Source of the DNA: Paramoeba atlantica
Lineage: Eukaryota > Protista > Discosea
Direction: 5' to 3'
NCBI GenBank assembly: GCA_977017575.1
Contig: CDRNVI010000167.1
Location: 62,001 to 126,000, forward strand
DNA: 64,000 bases
The notes below the pieces were generated by a model, which saw only the letters and a program-made list of their open reading frames with translations, ran no database searches and was not told the origin of the DNA. The position numbers and the translations under genes were made by a program. Shown piece by piece: positions 1,224 to 44,955 of the stretch (its first letter is position 1; every line of letters begins with the position of its first letter).

Positions 1224-1255
<32 letters not shown>

Positions 1256-13590: not shown

Positions 13591-13591
13591 C

Positions 13592-14925: not shown

Positions 14926-14957
<32 letters not shown>

Positions 14958-15084: not shown

Positions 15085-18042
15085 CTTTTTTAACAAATAG
15101 AAGAGAAAGAGAGAAGAGAGAAGAGAGAAGAGAGAGAAGAGAGAGAAGAGAGAAGAGAGAAGAGAGAGAGAGAAAGAGAAAGTGGAAGAGAAAGTGGAAG
15201 AGAAAGTGGAAGAGAAAGTGGAAGAGAAAGTGGAAGAGAAAGCGGAAGAGAAAGCGGAAGAGAAAGCGGAAGAGAAAGAGAAAGAGAAAGAGAGAGAGAA
15301 AGAGGAGAAGAGAGAAAGAGAGAGAAGAGAAGGAGAAAATGAGGAATGAGAGAATGAGAAAGAGAGAAGAAGAAGAAGAGAGAAAGAAAAAGGAAAGAGA
15401 AAAGAAAGAGAAAAAGGAAAGGGAATAAAAGAAAAAAAGTATTATTTCAAAGGTTTTTTCTTTTTAAAAAAGAAAGAATTAAAAAAAAAGATTAAAGAAA
15501 AAGAAAAAGAAAAAGAAAAAGAAAAGAGAAAAAGAAAAGAGAAAAAGAAAAGAGAAAAAAAAAAGAGAAAAAAAAAAGAGAAAAGAAAAGAAAAGAAAAG
15601 GAAACCGACCACCCCACAGAAAGGAAAGGAAGGGAAAGGAAAGGAAGGGAAAGGAAAGGAAGGGAAAGGAAAGGAAGGGAAAAGTAAAAAAGAGAAAAAG
15701 AGAAAGAGAGAAAGAGAGAAAGAGAGAAAGAGAGAAAGAGAGAAAGAGAGAAGGGGGGAAAGTAGCGAAAAAACAGAGAGAGAAAAAAAAAAAGAGAGAA
15801 AAGACGCTGGATCCAAAAATTTGGAACATCCAAAAAAGAAGAAAATGTACTCAGGGACAAAAAAAAGAAGAAAGAAAAAGAGGGAAAAGAGGGAAAAGAG
15901 GGAAAAGAGGGAAAAGAGGGAAAAGAAAAGAGGAAAAGACAGGAGAAAAAAAGAAGATAGAGGTTTTCGGACCCGAAATAGGGGTCCGTCATTTGGCTGC
16001 TATTTTTTTTCTCATTTTTGGTTCCTCTTTCTTGGTTTCTTCTCTCAGTCCTTTTTTTTTCTCTCTTTTTTTTTTTTTCTCTCCAAAAAAGAGAAATGGG
16101 CGTAAATCAGAGATTTATTTCAGGGTTGAAAGTCAACAAACAAGAACGAAAGTTTCAATGGTAAAAGCAAAAGCAAAGCAAAAAGCAGAAAACAAAGAAA
16201 AGGAGTGAAAGCAGGCACAGGCTGGCTGCAACGCTAAGAAGAAGAAAGAGCAACAAAGGATTCAACGCGTGTGTTGCCAAAAGAGACACAAAGAAGGGAA
16301 AAAAATGAATTCGAGAGCTAAATCTAGCGCGGCAGAATGAGATAAATTCCTATATTAGGGAATTCCTTGTTCGTTTCCGTTTGGTCTCTTCTTCGGGGAC
16401 CTCTTGTTCAAAAAACAAAATCGCCAACTCTCTCTCTCTCTCTCTCTCTCTCTTTTGTGTGGGGTACAAAGAATTCAGCAAAATCTTCAAAAAATCGTGG
16501 GGTGTTTGTTTTTTTCTTATATTTCTCTAATTTTCTTCTTCTTACTTTCTTTCTTTTCTTTTCTTATTTCTTTTCTTTCTTTTTTAGATTGTGGTGAGAG
16601 ACTAAATCAAGAGTTGTTTTTGACCTTTGGTTATGCTCTTTGATCCAGAACAAAAGAATCTTTGTTGATGGATCACTATTACATTGGTGAGGGATATTGG
16701 TGAATCTTGTTGTGTGTTGCTTTTTTCATTGAACATGAGAAAAAAGAAGAACTTTTTTTGATGGTGGTTTTGCGCACACAATGTTAACATTCTTTTCTTT
16801 TGTGGCCAATTTATCGTTGTGTTTGCTGTGTTTTTTTTTTTTCTTTTCCCCTTGTTTCATTTTTGTTGTTTTTTGAGTGGGTTTTCTTTTCTCTTTCCCT
16901 CTTTCCCTCTTTCTTTTTCCTTTTCTTTTTTTCTTTCTATTGATAAACTCTTTTCAGGGGAAATGTGGAAAAGACCATTCAAGATTTCTTTTTTTCTCTT
17001 TACTCTTTTTTATTCTTTTATTCTTTTCTTTCTACTTTTCTTTTTCTTCTTTTTCTTTTTCTCCCTTTTGATGGTGTTCTTCAAAAATTGTGAATACTAA
17101 TTTTTCTTTCTTTTCTTTCTCTAACCTCTCGAGATGGTCCCTAATGAGATATTAAAATAATCTGGCTGCATGTTCAGAGACCTCTGTTTTGTTTCGTGCT
17201 CCACTCCATTGCGGAAAGAAGAGAAAGAAGGGGGTTAAGTTTGGCAAGAAATTTGGAGAATATGGCTATTTTTTGACTTCTTTTAACCTCCTTCTTCTTG
17301 GCGATGATGAATTAATTAATATATTAAGAGGTACCATGAATTTTGCTTGAACTCAGAAGTGGAGTCTATTCCCACCCAACAATTCACAAGGAGAGGGAGT
17401 TTGCCACTCTTGTTACATCACCACAGGTTTCTTTTTTTCCCCTCTTTATTTTGTTATTTTGTTGTTTTGGTGTTTTTGTCAAGTAGTTTAATTGTTTGTT
17501 TTTGTGTTTTTGTATTTTGTTTTTATTTTGTTTTCTTCTTCACTTACAAACCTTCTTCTTAGAGTTTTGAGTTGTAAACTTTTGGTGTTTCGTTTCTTCA
17601 CTGTGTAGTGTTCAGGTTTTATTTTGGTATAAATGTGATTGTTTTGATTGTTGTTGCTATTGTTATTGCTGGATGTTATTGATTGTTTCAAAAGAGCCAA
17701 GAGAAGTGTTTTTTGAGAGCTTGTTGTTGGTTGTCGGTCGGTTGTTGGGTTGTTGGTTGGTTGTTCAGGACAATCCAAGCCAATCCAGACAAGACAACCC
17801 AAAAGAGAACCCAAGAATATGGTGGTATCCTAGAAACTAGAGTTTGTTTGCTAGAAAGAAAAGTGTTAATAGAGGTTGGTTTTCTTTTTCTTTTTTCTTT
17901 TCCCTTTATTTCTTTGATATTTTAGTATCATGTTTTTTTCTCTTTTCCCCTTCTTTTTCTCTTTCTCTCTCTTTTTCTCTTGTTTTTGTTTTTTGTTTTT
18001 TCTTTCATTCCCTTTTTTCTCTTTTTTTCATCATGCAATATA

Positions 18043-19122: not shown

Positions 19123-19257
19123 GAATGATAAAATACCAACAAAAATACCAATGAAATGTGAGGCAAACAACAAAGAAAAACTAAAAAAAACAGCAACTTT
19201 TTGCACACTTTTAGTGAACTAAATTTTTATTAGGGGTTATTTCCTCTTTCTTTTTTC

Positions 19258-19725
19258 TCACTTCATTGTAGATTGTGCCAATGCATGTTCCAAAACTTTC
19301 ATCATAATCAACAGATGCAACTGAACCACCCTGAAGTTAACAAGAAATTCCACCTTCTCCAATCTTTCCAACAATTCCATTTGCAGTAAAAGAAACAACC
19401 ATCTTTTCTTTTGATTTTAGCTCTTGTATGGTGCCCACATCACAAATACTAATTTACTCCTTTCACGTGTGATCAGAAGGAGAGATATATTTTTGATGTG
19501 AGTCAATCCATATGCACATTTGTCTCTTGGGAGATGAGTTGTGAATTCAGTCCATTTTCTGTTCGTCCATCCACCACATCCCCACTTTTTGATAAATCAT
19601 GATAATTCAGTTCGACATTTTCCATGTTGTTGATCAAGAAGATACACCCCTTTTGACTTCCCAAATTTGACAGACTGAGCAATAGAGAGGATACATTCAT
19701 CAGAAAATTGAACCACAGAAGCCAT
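19258..19725 (-). pseudogene. ADF/cofilin-like remnant (intronless, frameshifted)
   Basis: MASVVQFSDECI...VKFGKSK, KWTEFTTHLPRDKCAYG, RSKLVFVMWAP and KMVVSF...LQGGS follow the ADF-H consensus. At least three frameshifts are needed. Confidence 0.65.
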
Positions 19726-20399
19726 AGTAGTTGTATTTATTGATCAATCACACAAGAAGGGATTACTTTGTTTTGTTTTGGTTTGGTTGTTTTTGATTGT
19801 TTTTGATTGGTTTTTGTTTTTTGTGTTTTGAGTTTTTGTTTTGAGTTTTTTTTTGTGTGTGTGTGTTGGGTCAAGTCAAGGAGGGGGACGAAGAAACCTG
19901 TGTTTTTTGGAAAAAGTTGGCTCAGTTCAGTGAAGTGTCTATTGGTGCGTTGGGGCAAAGCCAAATAATAATAATCCAATTGCATTGAGGACCGCTCAAA
20001 ATTGCTGTCTGAGAATCACTCAACTTGATCCTCTTCTTTTTCATCACACACGAATTTGCTCAGAATCCAGAACAACAGGATGCACATCCCAAGTTTTACA
20101 CATTTGAGACACAGAAAGGAGATTCATCTTGCATTGAGTGTTTCTCATTTTTCGAAGACAACTCTCCACAACCAACCCCTCACTTCGAAAAAAAAACCAA
20201 ACCCGCCCAAACCAAACCCGCCCAAACCAAACCCCAATCAATGCTTTCACTGAACAAAAAAAAAGTCAAAAAAAAAAAGGAAAATTTTGTGAGAATTGAA
20301 CCACCCCTCCCCAAAACCACCCTCCTTTTTTTCCAGTCTAAGTTTTGTTTTTTGTGGTGGTGTCTTTTTGGTGATTTTGTTTTTTGTTTGTTTGTGGGA

Positions 20400-20800
20400 T
20401 TGTTCTGTTCAAGCTCAAAGATTTTCAAAGCCTCTGAAGGAACATCCAGGATGTGTATGGAACTTTCAACTGTAGTTCTCAAGTGTTCTATCTCAATGAT
20501 GAGTGTGATGTGTTGTCTTTGTGAAACGTGACCAAGACTTGGAGAAGATGCTTTATTTCTCCTCCCAAAAAAGAGCAAACAAGATGGTGACAGCAGTGAA
20601 GAGTCATCAGGAGATCGAAAATCGAGTGAATGATGATGAAGAGAAAGTGGGTGATGAGAAGAATACTGATGATGTTGATTCAGTTTCTGAGAACTCCAAG
20701 AAAAGCCTCAAAGGAACAACAGAAGAAGAGAGAGAAGAAGATTGAAATGCTCAGGAAAAGTGTGATGAGAAACTGGCAGATCATATTGATGTTCTTGAGA
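20400..20800 (+). pseudogene. PB1/coiled-coil paralogue 2 (inverted relative to 3503-4460)
   Basis: Nucleotide homology, e.g. ATCCAGGATGTGTATGGAAC and GATGAGTGTGATGT..TCTTTGTGAAACGTGA, continuing into the EIENRVNDDEEKVGDE segment. Confidence 0.65.
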
Positions 20801-22392
20801 GTAACACACAACCTCCCCCCCTCCCCTGCACACACCACAAAAGTCTCTATCTTTTTGTTGGTTCTTTTTCTTTTTTTCTTTTTCTTCTTTTCTTTTTCTC
20901 TTTCTCTTTTTCTTTTTTTTCTTTTTCTTTTTCTTTTCTTTTTTCTTTTTTCTTTTTTTTTCTCCTTTTTTTTCTCCTTTTTTTTCTCCCTCTTTTCTTT
21001 TTCTCTTTTTCTTTTTCTTTCTTTTTTCTCCTTTTCCTCTTTCTTTTTTCTTTTTTTTTCTCTTTTCTTTTTCTTTCTTTTCATTTTCTTTTTTTTTTTT
21101 CTTTTTCTGTTAGTTAGGTGACAATTTTTGAGTTTTATGAACAAATTAAAAGTTTTTTTGATTTGTTCAAACAACTTTTTTTCTTCTTATGATACAATTC
21201 TTGCTGAGAGACTTGAGACCACACATCCAAGGTTCTTTTTTCCCTTGCTTGATCTGCTTTCAATCAGAGGTTTTTCCTTCTCTTCCTCTTGTTTCTTTCT
21301 TATCTTTCTCCTTTTTCTCCCTTTTTTACTTTCCCTTTTTCTTTTTTATCTCTTTTGTTTTCCCCCCTCTTTTCCTCCTTTCTCTTTTTCCTCTTCCTTC
21401 CTTCCCTCCTTTCTTTCCCCTTTGTTTTTTTTAAAATTCATTGACTTTCCTTTTGAATGAAGGGAGCTTCTTTATTTTGTGTTTTGTTGTTCCTGGAGTA
21501 TTGTGCATTGTTTGTGGGGGGGGAATTGTTGTTTGTTGTTTTGTTGTTTGTTATTTGTTATTTGTTGGCAGTTGTTTATAGGTGGTTGTTTCTTGGGTGG
21601 ATATTTGGGTTATGGTTATTTGGTTTTGTTGAATACCTGTGGTGGAGGGAGGGGTTTTGGTGTTTTGTTGTGATGATGATGTTTTTTTTTGTTTTTTGTT
21701 TTTTTTAATCAAAAAAACTAACTTTTTTTCTTTTCTTTTCTTTTAAAAGGGATAATTGCTTTCCTCTTTGTATAATATTTCCACTTTGTACTTGGCTTTT
21801 AATAATTTATTTGTGATTAACATTCAAGATCAAGAAAGGCAAAACAAATTGAAAAGATTGTAAAGAGTGTTATAAACAAGTTAAAAAGTTCTTTTGATTT
21901 GTTCAAACAACCCTTTTCTCTTTGATGTTATAAGAGGATTAAACCTGGTGGACCCTTGAGAATTTCAATTATTTCTTCAATTATTTTATGACTCACCCCA
22001 GTTCAATGTTGGGAACCTTTGATTTGGCATTCCTTTGTCTTCTGAGAAAGAAGAGCTTCAAGAGAAATGGAACCTGACTCAGATGGTTAAGCTGTGAGAC
22101 TATCAGCTTACTAGGGTTCTTTTTTCTTTTTTCTTTATCATTAGATTTTTTTTGTTTGTTTCCATTTTATTTCCCCTATTTCCTTTATCTTACTCTTCTG
22201 ATCTTTTCTTTTTGCCTCCTTTTTCTCATTTTTTTTGACCAGAGAACTCTTTTTTTTTGTTGAAACAATCAACTTATTGGATAACCATAAAAAGAACTTT
22301 CATTCTTGAATGGATGAAGAAGTGTTATTTTGGTTCTTTTCCTATCAGTGGTGATCCAAGCAATGCTCAAATGACCTCAAGGAAGAAAACTT

Positions 22393-22436
22393 ATACTCTT
22401 TGGGTATGAATTTTCAAATTAGCACCCAGAGAGTAT
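22393..22436. repeat. Dispersed hairpin, copy 3
   Basis: ATACTCTTTGGGT / ACCCAGAGAGTAT (one T:G pair), same inner stem. Confidence 0.65.
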
Positions 22437-22679
22437 GAAAATCCTAGGTTCATTTTGGTAACCCTGGTGACTTTGGTTTGTTATTTTTCAAATAATGTCT
22501 TCTATTTTTGTCTTCTCTTCTTTGGAGGAGGATTGAAAGACTTCTTTTTTGAACCTAGGAGAGTAAGGAGAAGGGCAAGAACCATCTATTCACCTGACGG
22601 GTTCAATTCCCACATATTGAATTTTTTCATTTTTCTTCATCTTTTTGTTCCAATTTTCTTCAATCCCTTCTGTTTGAGT

Positions 22680-22750
22680 GTTTTTTTTTGTCTTGATGAT
22701 GAGTGTGATAGTGTCTTTGTGAAACATGACCAAGACTTGGGAGATGCAAA
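22680..22750 (+). pseudogene. PB1 paralogue 3 (OPCA-motif fragment)
   Basis: Translates CLDDECDSVFVKHDQDLGDA. Confidence 0.55.
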
Positions 22751-23946
22751 AAGGATTGAAAGGAAACAAAAAAAACAAAAAAAACAAAGGATAAAAAAAA
22801 TTGTGAAACCCCAAAATCTTTTTTTTGTGGCTAAAAAAAGAGTGTTGCACCTTCCCCACTCTAGTTTTCTGTTTTTGTTCTTGCCATCATCTCTTTTCTT
22901 TTCTCCTTACTTCTCTTTTTTTCTCCCTTCTTTTCTCCCTTTTTTTTCTTCCCTTTTTTTTCTTTCTTTTTGTTTCTTTTCCTTTCTCTTTTTCCTTTTC
23001 TCTTTTTTTCTCTTCTTTCATAGGTCACTGTGATCATGATTGGGTTAAATATGTTGCTTCAAGTTGTGGTTTCTTTTTCTTTCTTTTTTTTCTTTCTTTT
23101 TCTTTCTTTTTTTTCTTTCTTTTTTTTTCTTTCTTTTTTTGTTTTCTTTCTTTTTTTCTTTTTTTCTTTTTCCTTTTCCTGTTTTTTTGTGCTTTCTTTT
23201 TCTTATTTCTTCTTTTCTTTGGTGGGTTACTTCTCTTTTTTGTTACCAGAGAGCCAGAGGGTTGATGGAGAATCTGAGAGTTAGGTTTTTTTTGTTTTCT
23301 TGAATGAAATTCAAAAAAAAAGATATCCCCCTCCAAAAGGGAACAAGAGTGAGGTGAGGGATTGAATAATTACTGATGTGAGTTTTTTGGACTGTTTTTT
23401 CTTGCTTGTGTTTGTTGGAACTTGTGTGATCTATTCTTTTTTTTCTTCAAAAAAGGTTTTTTTTGTTATGTTTGCTTTTATTATTATTTGGTTTTCTTTT
23501 GTTGGTTGGTTGAGATGTTGTTGGGAGAGTTGTTTAAAAGTTTGGATCCTCAACTTATCTTTGAGAGAGAATTACTGTTTGGGTTATTTTTATGGATTGT
23601 TGTTTCTTTCTTTATTCTAGGTTTTTTGGTTGTGTCACATATATTATTTAAAACTGTTTGGAATGATTTCACCCTGAAAGTGTTTGTTGGCAAAGAGTCT
23701 GTGTGAATGTTGCTGTTGTTGTTTTGTTTGATTCTCTCCAATAGTGTACTTTGTTTGGAATATTGTTGTTGTTATTTTGTTATTTTATTATTGTTGTTAT
23801 TTATTGTTGTTATGATTATTTTTTTCTCAGCCTGGCTCACTCTCTTGTCGATATTATTTTTTATTTTTATATCCATTTCCATTTCCTTTTTCCTTTTTGT
23901 TTTTATGTGACATCTTGTTTTTTTTTTGTTGTGAAGCTTTCTTGGA

Positions 23947-26900
23947 TGAAGCAATCCTTTGTAGATTTTGTTTTATTTCTGAGGTTTCAAAGAAGTACAG
24001 TTGAGAAACTGGGAAATCAACAAGTGAGAGAGTAGAGAGGAGAAAACACAGTGACAGGATGTTGACAACAATGAACTGCAATCAGTTGAACTGAATTTAA
24101 CAAGGATTCAAATAAAGGTGTTATATATATTTATAATATTTCATATTTGGATATTTAATTATTTACACCCCCCCTTGCAAGCAGAGTTTTGAGCGCAGCT
24201 TTGTCAGTTCTGAACAAAATTCAAAGTTCTTACAGGGAAAATCCACCCATTATTGATCAGTCTGCCCACCAATAACCTTTTTGAGGCTTCTTTGCCTTGA
24301 GGTAATCTTTCAACTCTTTTGTACCTCCCAGGTGTTCTTTCTCCCACCACTTATGTCATTTTCTTCCAGTAGGTGGTTGGATTTCCATACAATATTGTTG
24401 ATAACCATCAAATTCTCTTTCTGAGATAATTCTATATCTCAGACTTCTTCATCCATCTCCTGGTGGGAGTTCTTTCTCCTTTATCAGGTTTTGTTCCTTT
24501 TCAATTTCAACCCTTTCATATTAATTCACTTCCATGAACAGGTTGTGGAAGAATCCATCTTGTTTTGAGATTCCTTAATCGATATATTTGAGCTGAAACA
24601 ACCTCAGTTATCATATGGACATCACCTTGTGTCCTTGGATTGAATTTTTGGTTAAATTTCTTCCTTTTTTCATGATTTAGAAGAAGGACTCAGTCTCCAA
24701 CCGATAGAATTTGAGTTCTTTGATGAGCATTATAGTCATCAACTCTTTGTTCCTTGGAATCTCTTCATTTTTCATTTACCAGTTGAAAGATTTCTAACAT
24801 CTTATCCCTCACATTAGCCACATATTCATCTGAAGTAACCAATTTTGGGTTTGATGTTCCCAGTGTAACATTGATTGGATATGTTGGTATTCGACCAAAT
24901 TGTAACATGAAAGGTTTTTGTTTTGTTACAAAATGAACTTGGGTATTGTAAGCAAATTCCACCAATTGGAAGGAGCAAATCCCACAGTCCCTTTGATATT
25001 TCTGGACATAAAGCCCTCATCATGTTTTTAACAGGTGAATGAATTGTTCCCACTTTGCCATTTCCTTTGTGGTTATAGAGGGAGACCTTTGCATGGTGTG
25101 TTCCTCAGATTTGTGTCAATTCCACAAAGAGTTCTTTCTGGGCCCCTCCATCAGTCACTATTTCCGGTGGCATTGAATGGATTGTAACATATTTCAAGAG
25201 GCATTGTGCCATCTCTTTTGTGATGACAGCTTTCAGTGGAAATAATGAAAAGTACCCTGTGAAGGCATCCACAATTGATAAGATATGGGTATATGTATTA
25301 TTGAGACAATAATGTCACCTTGTTTCCAATAATTTCTGAATGTCTTTACAAAACTCAGGTATTCTCTAATTAAGATCAAATTTCTCATTCTTTGACAAAA
25401 TTGATCCTTCATATTGCTCCAGTATTGTTCTTGGTCCTTTATGATCCATTGTTTTTCTGAATCATTCTGATTCTCAGATCCAGTGTGGCCAGCACCAGTA
25501 TCTGACAGTTTTGCTCCTTCTGGCTCCTTATTTATAAGAGGTTGTATTTCAGGCACTGTATGAACTCTGGTAGGTTCACCTGGTTGTGTACTTGACCTAA
25601 ATTCATCCTCACTTCCAGAGTCAGAAATGTCATTACACTCAGTCTTGCTGGGAATTGTCTGAAGCTAACCCATCACACTGCCCAGTGTCTTACATGAAGC
25701 TGACCCAACAGCTATCCCAGATAGTCATCCTTGAGAGAGTCCCCTGCTCCTTCCTTGAGCAGATTGGCCACCAAGCTGACCCATGCTTTCTGTGCACTGA
25801 CCCATTTTAGCCAATAACTCCTTTCCATCTCTGGTGGACTCATCTACCCTATGACAGGTTTTTGAGAGAGAACAGAGCTTCAATATTGCCATTTTTTGTT
25901 TGTTAAAATGTTGTTTTGTTTTCCACATTTTTAACTCCCAGTCTCTCCAGGACTTCTTAATTGGAGTTTGAGCATCTTCCTCTTGATAGGATACATGATG
26001 TGCTCAACTGAGTGTATCAGGAATAACCAGTGTTTTCCCAGGTTGGTGTAGAATTTGACTTGCAACTGCTGCTATTTCCAGCAGCCACCCACAGATAAGT
26101 TTGCTTCTTGTTTGCTTACTGTGGAGTTGCACAGTTTGACTGTTGACTCTGGTGCTCACTAAAAATCACCACATCTCTTCCCATAATGAATTCCTTAAAC
26201 TTGTTAATTGCCCAGTAAGCCTCATAACATTCTTGTTCAGAATTTGTATATTTTTATTGTGTTTTGGCAAAGCCAGACTTGTGAAAGCGACTATTTTGTG
26301 CTTTTTTGGTATTCCTGACCTTTTTGGTGCTGGTTTATCAAGAGGATCATCAGGGTGTTGTGTCAGTATTGAATCATAACCATTTTTTGATGTGTCCACA
26401 TGAATATAGAATGTTTTTCTGAAATTTGGCATTGGTATTCTTGCAATTGTTTCCTTCATTTCCTGAAATTCATTATCTGCCTTCTTAACCCATTCAAATA
26501 ATGGTTGTAGCAGTAATTCTCGAAGGTGGTATGTTTTTTGAGAACAATTGTGGATGAATCTCCTACACCAACTAACCAATCCTAAGAGTGATTGTAATTC
26601 CTTTTGATTGGTTGGTTGTGGAAAATGTTTTATGGCCTTGACTTTCTTGTCATTAGCCAAAATTCCATCCTTTGTTGCTGTATATCCAAGTAATGTGAAA
26701 GATCTTTCACCACTTTACTCAGGTTAATTTGCAACTTATTTTCCTTTAATCTATCCAGCACTTTCTCTACTAGTGATTGAATATGTTTCTCAAAGGTTTT
26801 TGAGAAGATAACTATGTCATCAACATAATTAATACAGATATATATCATTGCAAGCCAGCAAGTATTGTATCTATAAAATGTTGCTGTGTTGCCAGAGCAT

Positions 26901-29380
26901 TTGTTAATCCAAATGGCATTGAATTCCATTCCCACAGCCTGAATTGTGAACAAAAGCCATTTTTCCCTTGTCCTCCTCTTGGATTGGGATTGACTAAAAT
27001 GCTGCAGTCATATCCAATGTTGAAAAGAATGAAGATTCACCCAGGTATAACAACACATCATTAATTTTTTTGGTATTAGATAACTCCATTTCTTAGTCCT
27101 TTCATTTAATTCTCTGTAATCCACACAGAATCAGACTTTTTCATTTGCTTTTTTGCCACTAACATGGTGAATTTGATGATTGGATGACTCTTCTCTTGGC
27201 CATCTCTTGGATTTGATTCTCTTCAATTGTCCTTTGTATAATAAGCTCATCTAAAAGGCTTTTGAGTTTCATCTTTAAGTTCAATTTTGAACTCTGTTGC
27301 ATCTGTATGCATGATTGGAGCATTGCTAAGTATGTCCCACATTTCTTTGTATTTTTCAAAGAGTTTACAGAGTTGAATCATTTGATCAAGATTGAGATCA
27401 CTAAGAGTGAGGTCAGTTTTCTTTGTGAACTCCTCATATTCCTCTGGAATCATCTTTTCATCTTCTTCCAGATTTTTCTGACCATCTCTCAACAGGATAT
27501 TTGCTAAAGAACATTGATGCTATTTCTTCTGAGAATCCCCAACCTCCTTGATTGCACATGTGTTTTGCCATTCCATGGCAGTCCTCTTGAGGCTGTAGTT
27601 CTGGAGTGACCAATTTATCTTTATACATTCTTTCATCTGACTTCTTTTGGTGAAGTTTTACTGGTCTTTTATCAAGAGGTTTTGCAATGGTTTGTTCTGC
27701 ATTCTTTTCTGTAACATTAATGTGTTTTACAACATGTAGACCCTTTTTCAAGTGAGAATGAGGTATTTCCAACATTCATAATCTCAATTCAAGTAGTGTA
27801 GATATATTGTCTCACATGATCAAATCTCAGTTGTAGAGCTTTTTTTTTCTGTCTGACCTCAACTGCTAAGATTGATCTAGGATCCAATCTTGTTTGTGTA
27901 GTTATTTTTAATTCTCCAATCTCTCTGGGATTGGGAAGGAGTGAACTTCTTCAGTTGGCATTATTGATGATTTGTCAGCTAAGGAAATGTAATTTCCTTT
28001 GTAATGGTCTCCAAAGTTTGGGAATTGCTTTATTCAGGAATGTTCTTGCCACAACATCTATCCTGCAAGCCCTAGAATCACAAAGTGCTTGTGTAGTAAA
28101 TATCATTGACCATGCAAGGTATGTTGAACAGTTTATTATTTATTTGGTATATTTTAGGATTCAAGTCTCTTACTAGGTTGCCAATATGGATTGTGAAGCC
28201 ATTTTCACTCATCTTGACCACCATCTTGTCTTGTTGCCAAGTATTTTGAGTAAATTCCTTTTTACTCTTAAAAGAATTGACAAACCATTTGCTTTTTCTT
28301 TAAGTTCTTCAAGAGTTAATATCCCACATCCAAGGAGTTCACAAGTAAAGTATTTTCCAACTGAAATCCCCACATCCTCTCTTTCTTGGAACTCTTTTGT
28401 TCCAATTAACAAGACTCATATGTTTATATTTCCTTGCTGCAGCATCACCATATCTATCCACAGTGCTCATCCAGGGATGAAAGAAAACAGGTTATTGGTT
28501 CACTCCTCTTCAATTTTTCTTTGGTTCTTTAATACTCATCTGTTCCCCCCCTAACAGACACTTTATTTAGACCTTGGAAGATTGGATTTTTGAATTCTCA
28601 CATTGCTTCCTTCACATAGATTTCCTGAAAGGGAGTTTCTCTTATCTTCAAGAACAGGTGCAAATATTCTGTAGTTACCACCTGAAATTCTTGATTAGTA
28701 ACTTTTTTATCAGGTACTCAAAAAAGATCAAACTTCTGCTGTTCCATAAGGACAACTTTCTCACCAAAGAATCTATTAAGGGTACACAACAAATTCAAAG
28801 GTAATCCATCCAACTTTTGGCCTAATGACTTTCAATTGCCCTTGCAAACTTGATTTGTTTTCTGAACTCAAGTATGTTTGGTCAAATATCTTGTTTAATA
28901 CTCTTTTTTTAGATGCAAAATTGAGAAGCTTGGACTGGGTTTTGGAAATTCACATCTTTAATTACCAATTTCCAATGTTGTTTCTAAGATTTGTAATTTG
29001 ATTCTTTCATCTTTAAAAACTCCTTCTTTATTCACACCAACTCTTCATTTTGTACAACCAGGAAATGAATTGCCTTCACCAATTGTTCTGCTTGGAGTTT
29101 TCTCTAAGCAATTTCTCAAGATCAAATGCTTCTTCTATTGGTTATTCAAATTGAAGCATTACCAAGGTAGATTTTATTTTACTTCTAAGGTTTCAATAGT
29201 TTAAAGAAGTACAATTGAAAACTGGGAAAATCAAGAAGTGGAAAAGTGAAGAAAAGAAAATGTAGTAATAAGAATATTAATGATAATGAACTTTAATTAA
29301 TTGAATTGAATTCAACAAGAATTTAAATAAAGATGTTATATATATTTATAATATTTCATATTTGAATATTTTTTTAAACT
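23947..29380 (-). mobile_element. Ty3/Gypsy LTR retrotransposon family 1, ~5.4 kb, degenerate
   Basis: ~220-bp LTRs at 23947-24166 (3-prime) and ~29152-29380 (5-prime), with a G-run PPT at 24167-24174. RT (FSTLDMTAAF, NYVDDIVIFS) at ~26650-27200, RNase H (FYIHVDTSKNG) at ~26150-26450, integrase (PEIVTDGG, NGKVG, WDLLLP..EFAYNT) at ~24750-25300, possible chromo-like tail at ~24290-24440. Confidence 0.88.
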
Positions 29381-29681
29381 TAATTAAGATTTAAAGTTTG
29401 AATAAAAAACTTTTTTATATGATAAAATAATATTTTGAAAAGTTTTTAATTTAAAAAGTAGTGAAAAAGATATTAGTTTTAGATTTTATTTTGAAGAAGA
29501 AATATAAAAGATTAATACAAAAGAAATGATGTTAAAAGAGAAAAAATAAAAAAAAATTTAAACTAATCTCATTAACTTTCTTATTTTTTTGTTTTTTTAA
29601 AGATGAGTATGATAGTTTAGTTGTTCTTTTCTTCAATTTCTCATTTTTGAAGTCTCAAGTTCAATTCTTTTAATTTTTCAA

Positions 29682-29785
29682 TTTTCCAATTTTCCAATTT
29701 TCCAATTTTCCAATTTTCCAATTTTCTAATTTTCCAATTTTCTAATTTTCCAATTTTCCAATTTTCCAATTTTCCAATTTTTCAG
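29682..29785. repeat. 8-bp tandem repeat (TTTTCCAA)n at the left edge of the satellite
   Basis: About 13 copies, some TTTTCTAA variants, followed by a few (TTTTTTAG) units. Confidence 0.85.
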
Positions 29786-29817
29786 TTTTTTAGTTTTTTA
29801 GTTTTTTAGTTTTTTTT

Positions 29818-31330
29818 ATAAATAAGTTAAATAAATTGTAAAATTGTGTAAAAAGTACAATTTTATTTGTAACTTGTTTGGAAATGAACTTTTAAACATC
29901 AAAAACTAAATAACAATTGAGAAAAAATGAAAATAGAAAATAATACAAATAAACATTGAAAAAAGTGGTTGGAAAATAATCAAAAACAAAAGGAAATATG
30001 TTTTTTTTTTTGTAAATAAATCAAATAAATTGTAAAATTGTGTAAAAAGTACAATTTTATTTGTAACTTGTCTGGAAATGAACTTTTAAACATCAAAAAC
30101 TAAATAACAATTGAGAAAAAATGAAAATAATACAAATATTGAATTATACATTGAAAAAAGTGATTGGGAAATAATCAAAAACAAAGGGAAATATATTTTT
30201 TTTTTTGTAAATAAATCAAATAAATTGTAAAATTGAGTAAAATATTCAATTTTATTTGTAACTTGTTTGGAAATGAACTTTTAAACATCAAAAATTGAAT
30301 AATAATTGAGAAAAAATGAAAATAATACAAATAGACATTGAAAAAAGTGGTTGGGAAATGATCAAAAACAAAGGGAAATATGTTTTTTTTTTTGTAAATA
30401 AGTCAAATAGATTGTAAAATTGTGTAAAAAATACAATTTTATTTGTAACTTGTCTGGAAATGAACTTTTAAACATCAAAAACTAAATAACAATTGAGAAA
30501 AAATGAAAATAGAAAATAATACAAATAAACATTGAAAAAAGTGGTTGGGAAATAATCAAAAACAAAGGGAAATATGTTTTTTTTTTTGTAAATAAGTCAA
30601 ATAAATTGTAAAATTGTGTAAAAAGTACAATTTTATTTGTAACTTGTCTGGAAATGAACTTTTAAACATCAAAAACTAAATAACAATTGAGAAAAAATGA
30701 AAATAATACAAATATTGAATTATACATTGAAAAAAGTGATTGGGAAATAATCAAAAACAAAGGGAAATATATTTTTTTTTTTGTAAATAAATCAAATAAA
30801 TTGTAAAATTGAGTAAAATATTCAATTTTATTTGTAACTTGTTTGGAAATGAACTTTTAAACATCAAAAATTGAATAATAATTGAGAAAAAATGAAAATA
30901 ATACAAATAGACATTGAAAAAAGTGGTTGGGAAATGATCAAAAACAAAGGGAAATATGTTTTTTTTTTTGTAAATAAGTCAAATAGATTGTAAAATTGTG
31001 TAAAAAATACAATTTTATTTGTAACTTGTCTGGAAATGAACTTTTAAACATCAAAAACTAAATAACAATTGAGAAAAAATGAAAATAGAAAATAATACAA
31101 ATAAATATTGAAAAAAGTGGTTGGGAAATAATCAAAAACAAAGGGAAATATGTTTTTTTTTTTGTAAATAAGTCAAATAAATTGTAAAATTGTGTAAAAA
31201 GTACAATTTTATTTGTAACTTGTTTGGAAATGAACTTTTAAACATCAAAAACTAAATAACAATTGAGAAAAAATGAAAATAATACAAATATTGAATTATA
31301 CATTGAAAAAAGTGATTGGGAAATAATCAA
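29818..31330. repeat. AT-rich satellite: ~190-bp monomers in a 576-bp trimeric higher-order repeat
   Basis: Anchor TTGTAAAATTG at 29836, 30030, 30225, 30412, 30606, 30801, 30988, 31182. Spacings are 194, 195, 187, 194, 195, 187, 194. Confidence 0.95.
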
Positions 31331-31678
31331 TAATAAAAAAATGAAAAATCAAAAAAAAAAAAAAAAGAAATAATCTTAAAAATTAATTTCTTTAAATTTA
31401 AATTTTTTACTTAAAAAAAAAATCATAAAATAAATTAATTAAAGAAATTTTTTTTTTTTAATTTAAATATTAAAAATATTATTTATTAAAATAAAGTGTA
31501 ATTTAGATATTTAAGAATATACTTAAATTAAATTGTTATAATCAAGTAAAATTAACCCACTTCAATACTAATTTAATAATTAAAAGTTTTAATATATTTT
31601 TTTATTTTTTATTTCAATCTTTTTCAAAATTCTTTTTTTCTCATCAACCTTAATAGATCTAATAATCTTCTTTATAAT

Positions 31679-32900
31679 GTGGCCTATTCCTTGGTTTTTT
31701 TGAAGGGATTATTCTCTACAAAAATATCAAAAAAACCTTCTTTTTTTGGCTGCTTTTTGGTTGTGATGGTTTTAGTGAAAAAGAAATAAAGAAAGAAAAT
31801 TGTTTCATTGCTGGGAAAGGTTGTCTCCAAACCTCTCTCTTTCTCAAATATAAAATGGATTGTTGAAACAAAGCTTTCAAAGAACCTACTTGCTAAGTTG
31901 ATTGAGTTTTTGAAAAGGCAAGAGGATATAACGAAACTGTGGAATCTTAAATAGCCAAGAGGGTTCACTGAGAAGATGATCACTTTCTGCCTTTTCAAGA
32001 ACCTTAAAGGGGTTGGTTATTTATAGATTGAAAAGAATGTTAAATTTACTTTTGCTTTCTATACAAAGTGTTTGGCCCACAACACAAAGTTGATCCACTA
32101 TCTTCTTCTTCATTGAGCAGTTCCTTAGATCAAAAATGAGGAGCAACAAAGTTGGAATGAACAAACAAAGAATTTTTCCAAAAGAAGGGGATTGAAGAAA
32201 GTAAATCTTTCTCTTAATTCAGCAAACTTCCAATTATCCAAAAAACAGTCCACTTCTAAAAAGAGTTAAACTTGGAGTTACAAGGTAAATGGCTTTGCTC
32301 AAAGGTTTCAATTTCTTTTTGATAGAAATAAGATTGTTCAAAGGATTTGAGGTGGATATAGTCTGAAAGTGTATGATGGGGAGTGGGTAAAACTTGTTAA
32401 ATAGGACTTGATTGATAATTTTAAAAGGTTTATATTATTGTTAATACTCATTATGAAACAGCTAACAAAACTTTTAAAGCAATAAATGGTGAACATGATG
32501 TCAAGTTTTATACCCCAGTTGTCAAACCTTGAGGAGGGAAAAGAAAAGTTGATCCCCATCTTTCTCCTGATTTATCTCAAAGAGCAGCAGTTCTAACTGA
32601 AGAACAAGAGAAGTAGAACAAAAATGTGAATCATCTCTGAACTCAAGCAGAAACTCCTTTTGGTTCAGTATAAAATAGATGGAAGGTACTGGAGGAGATA
32701 TTTTGGGAGGATGAAAAATAACAAATGTACATTGTATACTTGGCAGTTGGAGTCCACAACTACCTTAAAAGAAATAAAAAAAAATAAATTTCATTTTTTT
32801 CTCTTTTTTCTTACAACCAAAAAAGTAGTTTCAAAAAAGGGGAATTTTTGATGTTTTTCTAAAGAATAATTCTTTCAAAAAAAACCAGGGAATAGGCCAC
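31679..32900 (+). mobile_element. PHIS-superfamily (PIF/Harbinger/ISL2EU-like) DNA transposon with dead DDE transposase
   Basis: ~86-bp imperfect TIRs (GTGGCCTATTCC...; 31679-31764 and 32813-32900) with 3-bp TSD AAT. One reading frame with nonsense codons and one frameshift gives LSLNSANF..TWSYKVNG..QRF..D..IVQRI*GGYSLKVYDG and T.EQEK*NKNVNHL*TQAETPFGSV*NRWKVL...IVYLAVGVHNY, which fits a DDE_Tnp_4-type C-terminus. Confidence 0.75.
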
Positions 32901-33052
32901 AATAGAAAATCTTATTACACTTTTCAACTAGTAGTTTTTTGCTTGCTCATACTTTTTTCTCTACTTTTGGTTTTTTTTCTCAACAAAACTTTCTAACATT
33001 TCACCAAATGCAACTCTTTTAAGAAACCACTTAATAATATTATTTGAAATAA

Positions 33053-33477
33053 TTTGGGTTGGCGCCTGTAGTTTAGTTGTAAATTCAACTATGTCCAACC
33101 CTAGGGGGGGCGAGTTCAAATCCCAGTTTTTCAATATTATAGAAAATTTTTCTGGTGCTGTAGAGTGATTTGATTGGAGTGAGGAGCTTTTGAAGAAGTG
33201 TGAAAATCAGAACAGGTTACATCTCAGCCCTGTCTGCTAAAAAGTTGAGGATAAATTCCCTTGGAAGGAGCTTTGGATTATTCTCCCTTCTGATGTGCAT
33301 CCTCCAGCCTGAACTTGCAGAAGTTCTAAAGTTCAACATAAAGACCAACTGAACTAAGCTGAAGTTTAAAACTTCACCTCTTGTTAGAGGTTAAAAACAA
33401 ACATAATTTAATGTAATTCAAATGGCTTAGATTAAGAACTACTAATTGAATAAAGTCTGCCTCAAAAAAAAAAAAAA
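33053..33477 (+). mobile_element. tRNA-head SINE 1 (~425 bp)
   Basis: A-box-like TAGTTTAGTTG and B-box-like GAGTTCAAATCC, poly(A) tail, 16-bp TSD ATATTATTTGAAATAA (33037-33052, 33478-33493). Confidence 0.85.
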
Positions 33478-33517
33478 ATATTATTTGAAATAAATATAAG
33501 AAAAATTATTAACCCAT

Positions 33518-36500
33518 CCAGTACAGCTTGTACTAGAAAGTAAATATTATTAATTATAATCATTTTATTCTTAAACCTCCTCTTAAACTGAACTTTCTTT
33601 ATAAGGAAGTTTTAATTTAAATCTAATAGTTTCATCACCCATTTTTATAACTTGGAATTTTCAATAATCCATTCTTCACTAATTGTTATTAGTTGCTTCA
33701 ATCTTGAATCTTAGTTTTTATTAAATATAGCTTCCATTTCATCTTTTTCAAAGTAACTTATTGTTGTTGTAATCACATTTGATCTTTTATTGAATTTATG
33801 ATACACATAAGTATACTTCACTTTGATAAATTTACTCTTAACAATATTTTTAATCTCAGATAGAATCTCATTAAATTCAAAATTATTAATTGACTTCATT
33901 TTAGATGCTACCTTAGTTAAAATTTTACAATCTCTCACTATCTCTATGTGTTGTCCAAAACCAATAACTTATTGTAGACCAACTAAGCATCTTAAAAACT
34001 CACCCAAGTTATTTAAACTTAATGGAATTGTTTCAAATCTATTTTTAACTTTCAAACCAATAATCACATCTCCAAATTCTCCAATACAAAGATTTACATG
34101 TTTAGAGTCATTATAAAACACTTGCAAAGTAAAGTATTTGAACTTTAGTTATTTCACTTTTTTTTTACCTTTGGAAGAAATTTTTCTTATAGTCTAAAGT
34201 TTGAAGATCATTTTGTTTGTTTTAGCAATTTCATCAAAAATTTTAATAATAAAGCTTGGAAACTTAGATTCTTCTACATATACAATAAGCCACAAGCTCA
34301 ATAGGGCTATACTCACTACAGATGCATTAGCCTTCTTTAAATACTAATTTATGAATTCACACACAAAGTCAGCACTCTCCCACCCAGGAATCTTTAAAAC
34401 AAAGCATTTCTTCTTAATAGTTTTTAAAATCACCTTAGCTTTTAAACATTCTTTGAGAAGGTGCACCTTTGACTCTTTGGCTTTCCTATACAGCTGACAA
34501 AGTAAACTCACAAATGTGAAATGGATAATCTTATCCATAGTTGAGAGGCTCCTCAAGAAGAACTTCAGAAGATTTTGCTTAATTTGGAGTCTTTGTGAAA
34601 GAGATAAATTATAGATTACATATTTTAAGCAGCCATCCTCTACATAAAAATTCTTCACTCCCATAAAAATGTTCTAAGATAGAAGAGAGAAAGATCTCTT
34701 GGTTTTGGAGCTCATTCTTATTTATTTTAAGATAACCCTATTAGCTTCTAAAGCATCAATTCTTATAGCTCCAATAGACAATAGATTCTTATAATAATCT
34801 TAGAGAAGCTTTCTTGATACTAGTAGAGCTCAGTTGAACAGAATAGGATGTTTAACTTAGGGTTTTTCAAAGAACAGGGAATAAAGAGAAGTCATTACAT
34901 AGAAGTTTAGATTTGCATATGCATCTAAGGCTGAATGAATGGCTTTCCACATCTTTGAGAAGATAGCTTTTGAGATAAGCTTAAATTTTATCAAATAATC
35001 CATACAAGGAATAAGATAAATATTAATCATCTAAACTCTCTCATTGAAGCTGCCTTTCTTTTGTTTAATTGCTGTTCCAACCTTTTGTATTTTCTTGATC
35101 ACCTCTTCTCAATCTTTAATTGGGTTTATTCTTTAAGAAATTATAATTCCCAAGTATATAGTCTTTTCTCTCAAATAATTAGCAAGGCATTTCAACTCAA
35201 GGGTCTTTTTCAATTGATAATACAAAACATTTATTGTAGTTGAGTTTAGCTTTAGTTCTTTGTTCATATTCTTGGAAGATTAAAATTAAGGAATTTATAG
35301 ATTGGATCTTGTGAAGGAAAAGGGCTAAATCATCCATAAACCCAGCAAGCTTCTTAAAGTCATCTCCATTGTTTTGAACAATAGAAGTGAAATGAAGCAG
35401 CTTTATTATACACCAGTCCAACTCTTGATGACTTTCTTTTGTATCTTATCATTCAATCCTACAGTTGAAAGCCATATATCTAACTCTTGCAGTACTTTAA
35501 ATATAACTTCAAAGGCTTAGAGTGAAGTATTCAACCTAATCAACAATTTTATAAAAGCTTTGTGGTTAATATAGTCATAGGTCTTACAAAAGTCAGTTTG
35601 GAGGATGATCATATCTTTGCCCTTTACCACAGTTTCCATAAACCCATCATGTATCAATTCCACTATATTATCAATAGACCTTCCAGCAAACATAGCATTT
35701 TGTTCAAGGAAAATCACCTCTCTAGCACTTTCCATCAATTACTTGATCTAATATCTCATTACAATCCAATAATCAGAATTAATAATACTTATTGGTTGAA
35801 ATTGGTCACGATAAGAAATATTCTCAATCTTGGGTAGCAACATAAGTTGACTCTCCCCAAATGATTTAAGAAAATCTATTAATTCTCCAGCTCTTTAGAT
35901 AAGTTCACACCACATATCACACAATTGTTCACTTGTCACTTTGTAGAGAGTAAAGGGAATACCATCTGGGCCAGCACTTGAATTATTACACCATTGCAGC
36001 AGTTTATCAACCTTGACCCCATCAACAATATGATAATCAACCTTAAGAAACTAAGGTTTATAGTTTTCAATCAACTTCTAAAGAAAGTCCTTGTTGTACA
36101 GCCTCACTGAGCTTAAAAGATTCCCTCAAAATTCTTTAATTGCTTTCTAGACCATACCATTATCTCTGGAAATGACCCCATCCACAACAATTCCTTTAAC
36201 CCTTAGGGATGATCTCACTTTAGGCCTCACAGAGTGATTGTTAATAAAGATCCCCAACTGTTCTTCAATACATTCAATCTTCTTGAATGCTGCAGAAATC
36301 ATTCTAAGGATTATTCCTCTCCTCCACAACTTCCCTTTCTTCAGACTCTTCCAACCAAAAGAGGTTTGATCCAACAGACCCATTTCAAGGGAAGAGTATG
36401 GCCTCTGAACAGTAGATTTTCTAAAAATGTGAGAATTGCAAAGGGATCTTACAAGAGAATGGATCTTTCACAGTTTTCTAAACAATGCTATCTCAATGTT

Positions 36501-44265: not shown

Positions 44266-44955
44266 TCATCCCAGAAAGTCTGAATCCGAGTCCTCATCCA
44301 ATACCAGCCTGTTCAACTCAAAACTTTCCTTTTCACTTGTCTCCATTTCTGAATCTGGACTTTCTTTTCTTTCACTTAATTCTTCCTCAAATCTTGAATC
44401 TTCCTCTTCCAACTCAATATCAGAACTTGATTCTTCTTCTCTACCTACTGCTGAAGTGATTGCATTTGTTCTCCTAAACTGGAAAAGAAGGTGATTTCCT
44501 TTCAATGAAGCTGCTCCAACCCATGAATTCTTCTTTTGGCCATAACCTAACCATTCAACTAAATATTCTTTTTTCTCATTACCTCTTTCAGCAAGTATTT
44601 TTGTTATCTCAACTCCTGGTACATCTTGCAAAGTTGTGACTCTACATTTCTGAACTCTTCTGACATTCATGAGGTGCAGCAGTATTTCTTGAGAATGGAT
44701 GTTTCTGAGGGCAACAGCATGATTATTGGGCTTTTCTACCACCTGGTAAATTACATTCCCATATCTTGGTAATAATTTCAGGTTGAGGCCTTTCTTCTTG
44801 AGTTTTCTCTTACACAAAACTAAATCTCCAGTGAGTGAATCCAACTTTGTAGTGAAACTCAAAACTTGTTTCAAGGTTGTGGTTTCCATCACCATCTTCC
44901 TCCTCTTCTTGGCTTCTTCTGTGGGCTCATTACAGTTTTGCTTCTCAGTTGGCAT
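44266..44955 (-). CDS. Open Gag-N/chromodomain fusion ORF (229 aa): basic NLS-like motif, chromodomain, acidic tail
   Basis: MPTEK...AKKRRK...LDSLTGD|LVLCKRKLKKK...VEITKILAERGNEKKEYLVEWLGYGQKKNSWV...EEESSSDIELEEED. No stop codon. Expression is unknown. Confidence 0.55.
   Translation of the reverse strand: MPTEKQNCNEPTEEAKKRRKMVMETTTLKQVLSFTTKLDSLTGDLVLCKRKLKKKGLNLKLLPRYGNVIYQVVEKPNNHAVALRNIHSQEILLHLMNVRRVQKCRVTTLQDVPGVEITKILAERGNEKKEYLVEWLGYGQKKNSWVGAASLKGNHLLFQFRRTNAITSAVGREEESSSDIELEEEDSRFEEELSERKESPDSEMETSEKESFELNRLVLDEDSDSDFLG

Follow-up and report, generated by a model that had tools for sequence, protein, structure and literature searches.

A mirror-symmetric repeat locus with a transposon core as a candidate regional centromere in Paramoeba atlantica

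Does the AT-rich satellite block on a contig of the Paramoeba atlantica assembly mark the core of a centromere, the flank of one, or a silent island of repeats that plays no part in chromosome segregation? The window, the whole 64,000-nucleotide stretch of DNA analysed here, lies on the 161-kb contig CDRNVI010000167.1 (C167 below). Window position 19217 is position 81217 of C167, and coordinates refer to the window unless a contig is named. A sequence-only reading had taken the block for a candidate centromere or pericentromeric core, flanked by nested retroelements.

The assembly also contains the amoeba's kinetoplastid symbiont, whose part (C1-C136) carries HSP83 tandem arrays 80% identical to Perkinsela. 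By the gene and repeat content outlined here, C167 belongs to the nuclear genome of the P. atlantica-like amoeba. Its cofilin gene is 97% identical to a transcript labelled P. atlantica in EukProt, and in a PDB search the best scores for this gene were cofilins and actophorins, with no match labelled kinetoplastid. The transposon families and identical 5S genes occur only on C137 and above, and TTTAGGG, the telomere repeat of the amoeba contigs, appears among the matches listed only from C138 upward. A kinetoplastid origin of C167 was rejected on this telomere, transposon, 5S and cofilin evidence. A search for the paraflagellar-rod family, which matched no contig of amoeba or symbiont, was uninformative.

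The GC profile, Tandem Repeats Finder (TRF) and monomer splitting all confirm an AT-rich block of about 2.4 kb that carries a nucleosome-sized satellite. GC content is 0.206, 0.191 and 0.208 in the three successive kilobases from 29 to 32 kb and 0.29-0.36 in both flanks, which delimits 2.4 kb of DNA with a GC of about 0.20 between decayed retroelements. Other stretches of the window are equally AT-rich (1-2 kb and 13-15 kb). These consist of strand-skewed polypurine low-complexity DNA, whereas the satellite block combines a balanced skew with a long-period repeat: at 29810-31337, TRF reports a period of 194 in 7.9 copies, with 90% matches and a score of 2497. The array resolves into 8 monomers of 185-195 bp (GC 0.18-0.19) in the order A-B-C, and the three monomers (194+195+187) form a 576-bp higher-order repeat. 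Copies of this unit are 99-100% identical and the monomer types 89-95% identical in the identity matrix. Nucleosome-size monomers in higher-order repeats, as expected of a satellite centromere, are thus found both in this trimer and in the 381-bp dimer of related arrays. The satellite pattern had no match in the JGI metagenomes, and a low-stringency BLAST search for its origin in a neighbouring transposon returned only A-rich noise outside the arrays. The array and its surroundings are as follows.

29810 to 31337, forward strand: satellite array, the inner array of the left arm (TRF and monomer identity matrix; 98-100% matches on C167, C184, C182 and C144)
31338 to 31610, forward strand: decayed continuation of the satellite, ~70% identity (BLAST comparison)
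29672 to 29815, forward strand: (AATTTTCC)n and (TTTTTTAG)n microsatellites at the left array edge (TRF)
29150 to 29670, forward strand: AT-rich left flank, found beside 9 arrays on 7 contigs at 97-100% identity
26166 to 26660, reverse strand: RT-RNase H fragment of an old LTR element directly left of the array (Pfam domain match)
2770 to 2888, forward strand: 5S rRNA gene directed toward the core, in the DNA that separates the outer from the inner array (5S gene search)

Several of these flanking sequences recur. The first ~105 bp of the decayed continuation also adjoin arrays on other contigs, and the 180 bp to the left of the inner array are found, 85-88% identical, beside outer arrays. Within the AT-rich left flank, 29152-29371 is a decayed copy (78%) of 23947-24156, 5.2 kb leftward, and the two form an LTR-like pair that is present at all loci. 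The copy adjoining the array has a GC of 0.21, compared with 0.31 in its partner, and the differences are mostly G>A and C>T. We found no tRNA genes within the window that might serve as boundary elements; the nearest lie 20-37 kb beyond the outer array.

A distance of 2.8 kb separates the satellite block from the inner end of the arm that contains it, one of the two arms of a giant inverted repeat.

19217 to 34140 (C167 81217-96140), no strand assigned: left arm of the giant inverted repeat (self-BLAST), with its mirror at C167 160962-145505, outside the window

Outside the array the arms are 99.93% identical, with 7 mismatches in 10,593 bp; on the core side identity falls to 98.0% and then to 95.2%. 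The mirror array on the right arm has 13 monomers where the left has 8, and 64 of the 66 differences between the arms are transitions. Because the array lengths differ, and because the core-side segments diverge by 2-5% through transitions only, the two arms are, on this comparison, real and separate sequences. The comparison with fungal RIP covered the transition excess only, which is seen between the arms and, as G>A and C>T, in the array-adjacent LTR-like copy. This excess bears out the earlier description of AT-rich, mutated DNA. Inverted repeats around a central domain, the hallmark of fission-yeast-like centromeres, are present on C167 and, by coordinates, on C184 and C182 as well.

Between the arms of C167 is a 49-kb core that consists of transposons only, a mosaic of retroelements and other elements, of which the window holds the left part.

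34141 to 64000, no strand assigned: leftmost 30 kb of the non-palindromic 49-kb core, whose remainder lies beyond the window (C167 96141-145504; self-BLAST, Pfam and genome DNA search)
44266 to 45051, reverse strand: chromodomain ORF (PF00385) of a core-enriched LTR element (Pfam)
49932 to 50420, forward strand: reverse transcriptase fragment, RVT_1 (Pfam)
56760 to 59060, forward strand: Ty3-type element fragments, RT-RNase H at 56760-57170 and integrase zinc-binding domain at 58167-59060 (Pfam)

No ORF of at least 120 aa between 32 and 64 kb has a Pfam match other than to a retroelement domain (RVT_1, RT_RNaseH, RNase_H, Integrase_H2C2 or Chromo), in agreement with the proposal that the DNA is gene-free for at least 32 kb to the right of the block. 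On the contig as a whole the gene-poor zone extends from ~34 kb of C167 to the contig end at 161 kb, where the only host genes found are one PB1-like ORF and one 5S gene. Retroelements do flank the satellite, as had been suggested, but the chromodomain integrases attributed to them are borne out only in part: the sole chromodomain ORF, at 44266-45051, contains no integrase domain, and the integrase fragments lie elsewhere. The locus thus combines gene-poor, repeat-rich and AT-rich or mutated DNA, and it does look like a chromosome landmark. A search for piggyBac homologues gave a best match of 43% identity, which did not help to place the contig taxonomically.

Copies of the core transposon families that are 91-95% identical are nearly confined to other loci, where they lie in the core or in DNA on its side, in an order that differs at each.

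C184 65-92 kb, C182 161-171 kb, C144 413-422 kb, and C177, C141, C149 and a few unplaced repeat contigs: core-family copies elsewhere (genome DNA search)

The layout itself recurs in the amoeba part of the 45.7-Mb assembly, which is what our locus count covers. Searches of the genome scored only the best candidates, so that counts of arrays and loci are lower bounds. Among 20 candidates, at least 17 arrays of the satellite family were scored on 8 contigs, corresponding to ~12 arms and ~6 loci. A locus typically has four arrays, two inner and two outer, and reads as an outer array (381-bp dimeric repeat), 31-43 kb of intervening DNA, an inner array (576-bp trimeric repeat), a core of 36-60 kb and then the mirror image, 130-170 kb in all. 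This two-tier layout is present on at least three contigs (C167, C184 and C182); as read from match coordinates only, C184 has a core of 60.5 kb and inner-outer gaps of 31.3 kb on both sides, and C182 a core of 36.5 kb. Arms that are near-identical within the C167 locus are 93-99% identical between loci, and 97-99% next to the inner arrays. Repeats are homogenised between loci, as the common left flank of the arrays illustrates. Some of the satellite contigs may be alleles of one locus, which would lower the locus count, because C141, C144 and the right arm of C184 are ~99% alike.

It is plausible, if somewhat short of probable, that the locus in its full extent of 130-170 kb is a regional centromere, in which the satellite block would belong to the pericentric flank. 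By its position, the block itself is a flank, the inner pericentric-type array of one arm, and not the core: it cannot be "the" core because at least 17 arrays are spread over 8 contigs and because it lies inside an arm, beside a 49-kb transposon core. The original proposal of a centromeric or pericentromeric core thus stands as to the satellite, the nested retroelements, the AT-rich decay and the pericentromere-like position, and fails as to the block being a core. Many blocks per chromosome had been named as evidence against that proposal, and in part they are what we see, with typically four arrays per locus. In the regional centromere that we propose, the transposon core would carry kinetochore chromatin. 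Silent chromatin would flank it on the inverted arms and their satellite arrays, and the chromodomain-bearing retroelements would home to this silent chromatin. Gene conversion from arm to arm would maintain the symmetry, and unequal crossing-over would create and resize the array-specific higher-order repeats. A telomere-capped half-locus on another contig, C141, would be the telocentric form, either a product of centric fission or a fusion partner. The repeats themselves decay by C-to-T-type transitions.

A somewhat unlikely alternative is that these are silent repeat islands that have no kinetochore function, such as relics of head-to-head chromosome-end fusions or duplicated dumps of transposons and satellites. 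On this view, duplication and gene conversion would have produced the satellites and the mirror symmetry incidentally. The evidence in its favour comes from chromosome ends. One contig, C141, carries half a locus. It ends in a TTTAGGG telomere, which is 30 kb away from the inner array and corresponds in position to the midpoint of the C184 core. On C191, C197 and C176, one transposon family of the arm-core boundary occurs no more than a few kb from telomeres, and it is also present on the telomere-bearing contigs C159, C205 and C208, six small telomeric contigs in all. Homology between arms of different loci extends over at least 75 kb, as it does between duplicated chromosome ends. Against this alternative, there is no run of TTTAGGG or TTAGGG anywhere in the 161 kb of C167, and the telomeric contigs C196 (63 kb), C188 (101 kb) and C143 (at least 386 kb) have no satellite. 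Moreover, 5S genes point in toward the loci from both sides and, on C143, away from the plain telomere. Of at least 21 telomere-bearing contig ends, C141 is the only one near satellite, so the loci are not confined to subtelomeres, a distribution that would likewise have counted against the proposal. An origin at chromosome ends is in any case compatible with a centromere, because telocentric centromeres also lie there. Counting against the centromere reading, at least 21 telomeric ends would, in a haploid and complete assembly, imply 11 chromosomes or more, which does not match cleanly one locus per chromosome. The ~6 loci were counted in a fragmented assembly that may contain alleles, by searches that give lower bounds.

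That the satellite array itself is the CenH3-bound core, in the manner of alpha-satellite or the plant 180-bp repeats, is very unlikely. The ~192-bp monomers, higher-order repeats, strong AT-richness and local homogenisation would suit such a core, as would the confinement of the family to few loci. The arrays are short, however (0.26-8.6 kb across loci), the 1.5-kb array of the window being among the smaller, and in place of a single long kinetochore array per chromosome each locus has four, an inner mirror pair 36-60 kb apart and an outer one ~130-145 kb apart. Such an arrangement would imply several separate kinetochore sites per chromosome.

It is also most improbable that the palindromic contigs are assembly artefacts, mis-joins of two similar chromosome ends or haplotypes whose symmetry is absent in the cell. 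Contigs C167 (at 160962), C182 (at ~185 kb) and C184, which is symmetric to both its ends, do stop inside arms, and C141 amounts to a telomere-capped alternative to half of C184. Yet three contigs have the same topology with different dimensions, and the differing array lengths and transition-only divergence mark the C167 arms as distinct DNA. No telomere repeat is present at any putative join in C167, and, by match coordinates, C144 independently crosses the region matching the C184 core midpoint. A giant foldback-type mobile element or amplicon, with inverted tandem-repeat arms around cargo and copied to several sites, would account for mirror arms with satellite arrays in several copies with common flanks, but it is extremely improbable given arm homology of at least 75 kb that declines outward from 99% to 93% identity, arms that include 5S genes and copies of host genes, cores that vary in size and order, and the failure to find termini or target-site duplications.

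If the loci are centromeres, their closest relatives in plan would be fungal. In fission yeast and Candida tropicalis, centromere cores lie between inverted repeats that are homogenised between chromosomes (PMC4741521), and in such regional centromeres, including those of Komagataella phaffii, further repeats lie outside (PMC4741521, PMC5010909). The C167 locus resembles these in having a central domain bracketed by highly similar inverted repeats. It differs from C. tropicalis in being ~10 times larger: the arms (at least 48 kb) and the cores (36-60 kb across loci) compare with 2-5 kb in that species. It differs from both yeasts in lineage, in the two tiers of 192-bp satellite arrays on its arms, and in a core that is a mosaic of transposons common to other cores and not unique DNA. 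Were the loci centromeres, a plan of core plus homogenised inverted repeats like that of fission yeast would have arisen in Amoebozoa also, roughly tenfold larger and with transposons and a 192-bp satellite as its material. The loci would then offer defined targets for CenH3 ChIP, Hi-C and methylation studies in an amoeba with a eukaryotic endosymbiont. Otherwise, we are describing an ordinary silent repeat block with unusually tidy symmetry.

Among amoebozoans, our literature search found a sequence-level centromere description for Dictyostelium only, and none of a Paramoeba centromere. Dictyostelium has telocentric centromeres of clustered transposons with locus-enriched retroelement families (PMC2665215, PMC2995078), which in D. 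discoideum are DIRS-1 clusters at one end of each chromosome. The half-locus on C141, a transposon zone directly beneath a chromosome end, fits this pattern. Most Paramoeba loci, in contrast, are internal, mirror-symmetric and satellite-bearing (three internal palindromes), and the telomeres are TTTAGGG and not rDNA-palindrome caps. Plant satellite and chromovirus centromeres, and alpha-satellite centromeres, resemble these loci in monomer length (~150-200 bp), in having locally homogenised higher-order repeats and in the chromodomain retroelements found among the repeats; the Paramoeba arrays are far shorter and sit in the flanks, not the centre. Subtelomeric duplicated blocks are alike in having long stretches of 93-99% identity common to chromosomes, and one copy here lies 30 kb from a telomere, but most copies are far from telomere repeats.

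A broader possibility, which we consider unlikely, is that the mirror loci are both the Paramoeba centromeres and the convergence points of a polarity spanning whole chromosome arms, with the same locus occurring in two forms, an internal palindrome and a half capped by a telomere. On every arm the 5S genes, and perhaps others too, would be directed from the plain telomere to the centromere, and the palindrome and its capped half would represent a centric fission or fusion caught in one culture. Polarity of this kind would be a new type of chromosome-scale organisation tied to the centromere, and, together with the capped half-locus, it would make questions of centromere-linked polarity and centric fission directly testable. 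The 5S orientation, which also favours the regional centromere proposed above, could have another cause. Of the dispersed, identical 5S genes, 26 of 28 point toward the locus, from both sides, a pattern seen on each of the six satellite contigs with such genes; with effectively 6 contigs, a sign test gives p ~0.016. On C143 all seven point away from the plain telomere.

The AT-rich block with a nucleosome-sized satellite that a sequence-only reading had reported in the window is real, since its GC dip, tandem repeat, higher-order structure and decayed right edge could all be measured. GC is 0.19-0.21 over window 29-32 kb versus 0.29-0.36 in both flanks, and Tandem Repeats Finder gives a period of 194 bp at 29810-31337 (7.9 copies, 90% matches, score 2497) as well as a period of 382. 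Cut at the T-run opening each unit, the array contains eight monomers of, in order, 191, 195, 187, 194, 195, 187, 194 and 185 bp (GC 0.18-0.19); identity is 99-100% three apart and 89-95% between neighbours, a higher-order repeat of three monomers (576 bp). Runs of (AATTTTCC)n and (TTTTTTAG)n adjoin the left edge, and 270 bp of decayed satellite (~70% identity) lies to the right. The window's further AT-rich stretches, at 1-2 kb and 13-15 kb, are of another kind: polypurine tracts with a strong skew. Kilobase-scale, strand-pure polypurine/polypyrimidine tracts of low complexity occupy window 1-2100, 7200-8300 and 12300-16000, among them (AGAAGAG)n, (GAAAA)n and (AATAAAATA)n, with AT and GC skews that reach 0.78.

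The further proposal that this block is a centromere core did not hold: it is a short flank array, of which there are four per locus. The locus consists of outer array, inner array and transposon core, then their mirror image. As a whole it has what one would expect in a regional centromere, being rare, large and gene-free, enriched in transposon families of its own and flanked by homogenised inverted repeats that carry satellites; it is also the convergence point of chromosome-arm polarity as marked by 5S rRNA genes, and is present in a telomere-capped, telocentric-like form on C141 (C plus a number denotes contigs of this assembly, C167 being the one with the window). We tentatively read the whole locus as a regional centromere. 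Its nearest precedents are centromeres of two kinds: those with inverted repeats in fission yeast and Candida tropicalis (PMC4741521), and the telocentric ones made of transposon clusters in Dictyostelium (PMC2665215). What sets the Paramoeba locus apart is its scale, a core that is repetitive and satellites in two tiers.

At least 47 identical 5S genes are dispersed over the amoeba contigs as single units of ~200 bp, to which sharing between copies is limited. They are co-oriented across stretches of 100-500 kb (7/7 on C143, 10/10 on C149, 4/4 on C170), and 26 of 28 face the locus, a pattern that holds on all six satellite contigs that have such genes. C144 carries them on the + strand between 104 and 363 kb, and its locus lies at 390 kb. 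They occupy the - strand of C149 between 144 and 540 kb (locus at 37-46 kb) and, with one exception, that of C177 between 73 and 335 kb (locus at 45 kb). Those of C167, C182 and C141 likewise point toward it. On C143, where a telomere stands at the start, all seven point away from that telomere. The tRNA genes of C167 stand beyond the outer array at a distance of 20-37 kb, none of them at an arm boundary.

5S and tRNA genes
Window 2770-2888: 5S gene, one example of the dispersed set
C167 2571-4251, - strand: cluster of tRNA-Met, tRNA-His and tRNA-Gly genes
C167 20200-20272, + strand: tRNA-Arg gene

The same loci could be islands of silent repeats or places where chromosomes once fused end to end, an explanation that we consider possible and rather doubtful, and on which the distribution of telomeres bears. 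Telomeres and centromeres go unmentioned in published Paramoeba and Perkinsela genome work (PMC5601477). A junction-specific telomere pattern matched 22 sites, every one of them at a contig end, on 20 contigs; adding C138 gives at least 21 chromosome ends. Telomere pattern matches total 4864, the listed ends are all on host contigs, and none of the matches listed places TTAGGG or TTTAGGG on C1-C137. No telomere repeat occurs anywhere in C167. Telomere and satellite combine only on C141, where core-type DNA fills the 30 kb from the telomere to the inner array and 31.3 kb separate the inner array from the outer one. The right half of C184 has a near-identical counterpart in C141 1-62518, whose arrays are far shorter (0.26 and 0.76 kb versus 6.0 and 6.5 kb). 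The C141 telomere falls at the equivalent of the C184 core midpoint, position 1 of C141 corresponding to ~82.7 kb on C184, where the core centre is at 82.7 kb.

Contig ends with (TTTAGGG)n
C138, C141, C143, C159, C163, C174, C176, C188, C191, C196, C197
C198, C205, C208, C212, C214, C216, C218, C230, C235, C239

That the satellite itself is the kinetochore site is improbable, and the block is one of many arrays. A whole-assembly search with one higher-order unit gave 146 matches in arrays on eight contigs, and a search with the dimeric variant returned the same arrays, at least 17 (17 scored of 20 candidates). Only the best candidates were scored, so array, arm and locus counts are lower bounds. 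Inner arrays of C167, C184, C182 and C144 have the three-monomer 576-bp repeat; outer arrays have a two-monomer repeat of 381 bp, with 44 monomers on C167 and repeat copies 99.9% identical.

Satellite arrays from the whole-assembly search
C167 39.9-48.4 kb, + strand
C167 91.8-93.3 kb, + strand: the block in the window
C167 147.9-150.4 kb, - strand
C184 12.3-16.8 kb, + strand: array 1
C184 48.1-52.4 kb, + strand: array 2
C184 112.9-119.0 kb, - strand: array 3
C184 150.3-156.8 kb, - strand: array 4
C182 94.7-102.5 kb, + strand: array 1
C182 144.8-147.7 kb, + strand: array 2
C182 184.3-185.3 kb, - strand: array 3

The mirror was read from the full sequence of C167 (160,962 bp, the window being its positions 62001-126000), reassembled from fetched pieces and aligned to itself; the layouts of C184 and C182 come from match coordinates. 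In the self-alignment 81217-93337 is the reverse of 160962-148826, refined to arms at 81217-96140 and 160962-145505, the right arm being cut off by the contig end. Identity outside the array is 99.93% (7 mismatches in 10,593 bp), and on the core side 98.0% (1.7 kb) and next 95.2% (0.67 kb), so that divergence climbs toward the core (0.07%, 2%, 4.8%). Core-side differences are transitions in 64 of 66 cases (93338-96140 versus 147867-145505; window 31338-34140 and its mirror), and the mirror array has 13 monomers versus 8 in the block. Because array lengths differ, identity is high and the differences are mostly transitions, the arms are separate DNA, both homogenised and eroded. An assembly artefact is a very improbable source of this symmetry; C144, by its coordinates, independently crosses the point homologous to the C184 core midpoint. 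The 49 kb between the C167 arms is non-palindromic. C184 is symmetrical between ~4.8 kb and 164.2 kb; its core measures 60.5 kb, and on both sides the inner and outer arrays are 31.3 kb apart. The C182 core measures 36.5 kb. An inverted, decayed copy (84-85% identity) of a cofilin + PB1 gene segment stands at the arm start, window 19233-20798. The segment itself, C167 32615-34169, lies 5.7 kb outside the outer array, as it does at every outer array of C167, C182, C184, C141, C149 and C152.

Likeness between loci extends well beyond the satellite. The 521 bp left of the block recur at 97-100% identity beside nine arrays on seven contigs, and the last 180 bp of this flank also beside outer arrays (85-88%); to the right other arrays share only ~105 bp, after which comes a dispersed transposon. 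Homology between loci continues at least 20 kb past the outer arrays at 93%. We count ~12 arms in ~6 loci (two each on C167, C184 and C182, and C141, C144, C149, C177, C219 and probably C152). Some of these may be alleles, judging from how alike C141, C144 and the C184 right arm are in sequence.

The retroelements and AT-rich mutated DNA that had been described beside the block were both confirmed. ORFs to its right carry RVT_1, RT_RNaseH, RNase_H, Integrase_H2C2 and Chromo domains, the remaining ORFs being without a domain, and on the left it adjoins an old element of LTR type that keeps a remnant of RT-RNase H. The LTR-like copies of this element are 5.2 kb apart, and the one touching the satellite is more decayed: its GC is 0.21 versus 0.31, and G>A or C>T changes number 24 versus 6 in the reverse direction. 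An ORF at window 5546-6355 (-) weakly matches a tyrosine recombinase (Phage_integrase, E 2e-4, under the Pfam cut-off). The C167 core contains Ty3-type, other retroelement and piggyBac sequences; the closest public relative of its piggyBac transposase has only 43% identity. Copies of the core families at 91-95% are nearly confined to the cores, or the core sides, of the other loci, and their order differs at each locus. That the whole structure is one giant foldback element is scarcely credible.

Core transposon features
C167 132042-134153, - strand: intact piggyBac-type transposase ORF, 704 aa (DDE_Tnp_1_7, E 1e-56), inside the core ~6 kb past the window end
C184 65-92 kb, C182 161-171 kb, C144 413-422 kb, and C177, C141, C149 and C219: core-family copies at loci
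C178, C207, C224 and C234: core-family copies on unplaced contigs

Two eukaryotes are present in the assembly, which has 248 contigs and 45.7 Mb. C1-C136 are those of a Perkinsela-like kinetoplastid symbiont, whose kinase genes lack introns and lie in near-identical contig pairs and whose HSP83 forms tandem arrays of 2.6-kb units (C12, C48, C88, C90); this HSP83 has 80% identity to Perkinsela sp. and 99% to a transcript that EukProt (EP00008) labels Paramoeba atlantica (MMETSP0151). C137-C248 are those of a Paramoeba atlantica-like host. Split genes, every listed TTTAGGG telomere, all 47 scored identical 5S genes and all C167 transposon families are on C137 and above. C167 itself carries polyubiquitin and cofilin genes; its cofilin has 97% identity to another P. 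atlantica transcript, and the top scores in a PDB search were cofilins and actophorins, while no hit of that search bore a kinetoplastid label. These traits and the cofilin assign the locus to the amoeba host.
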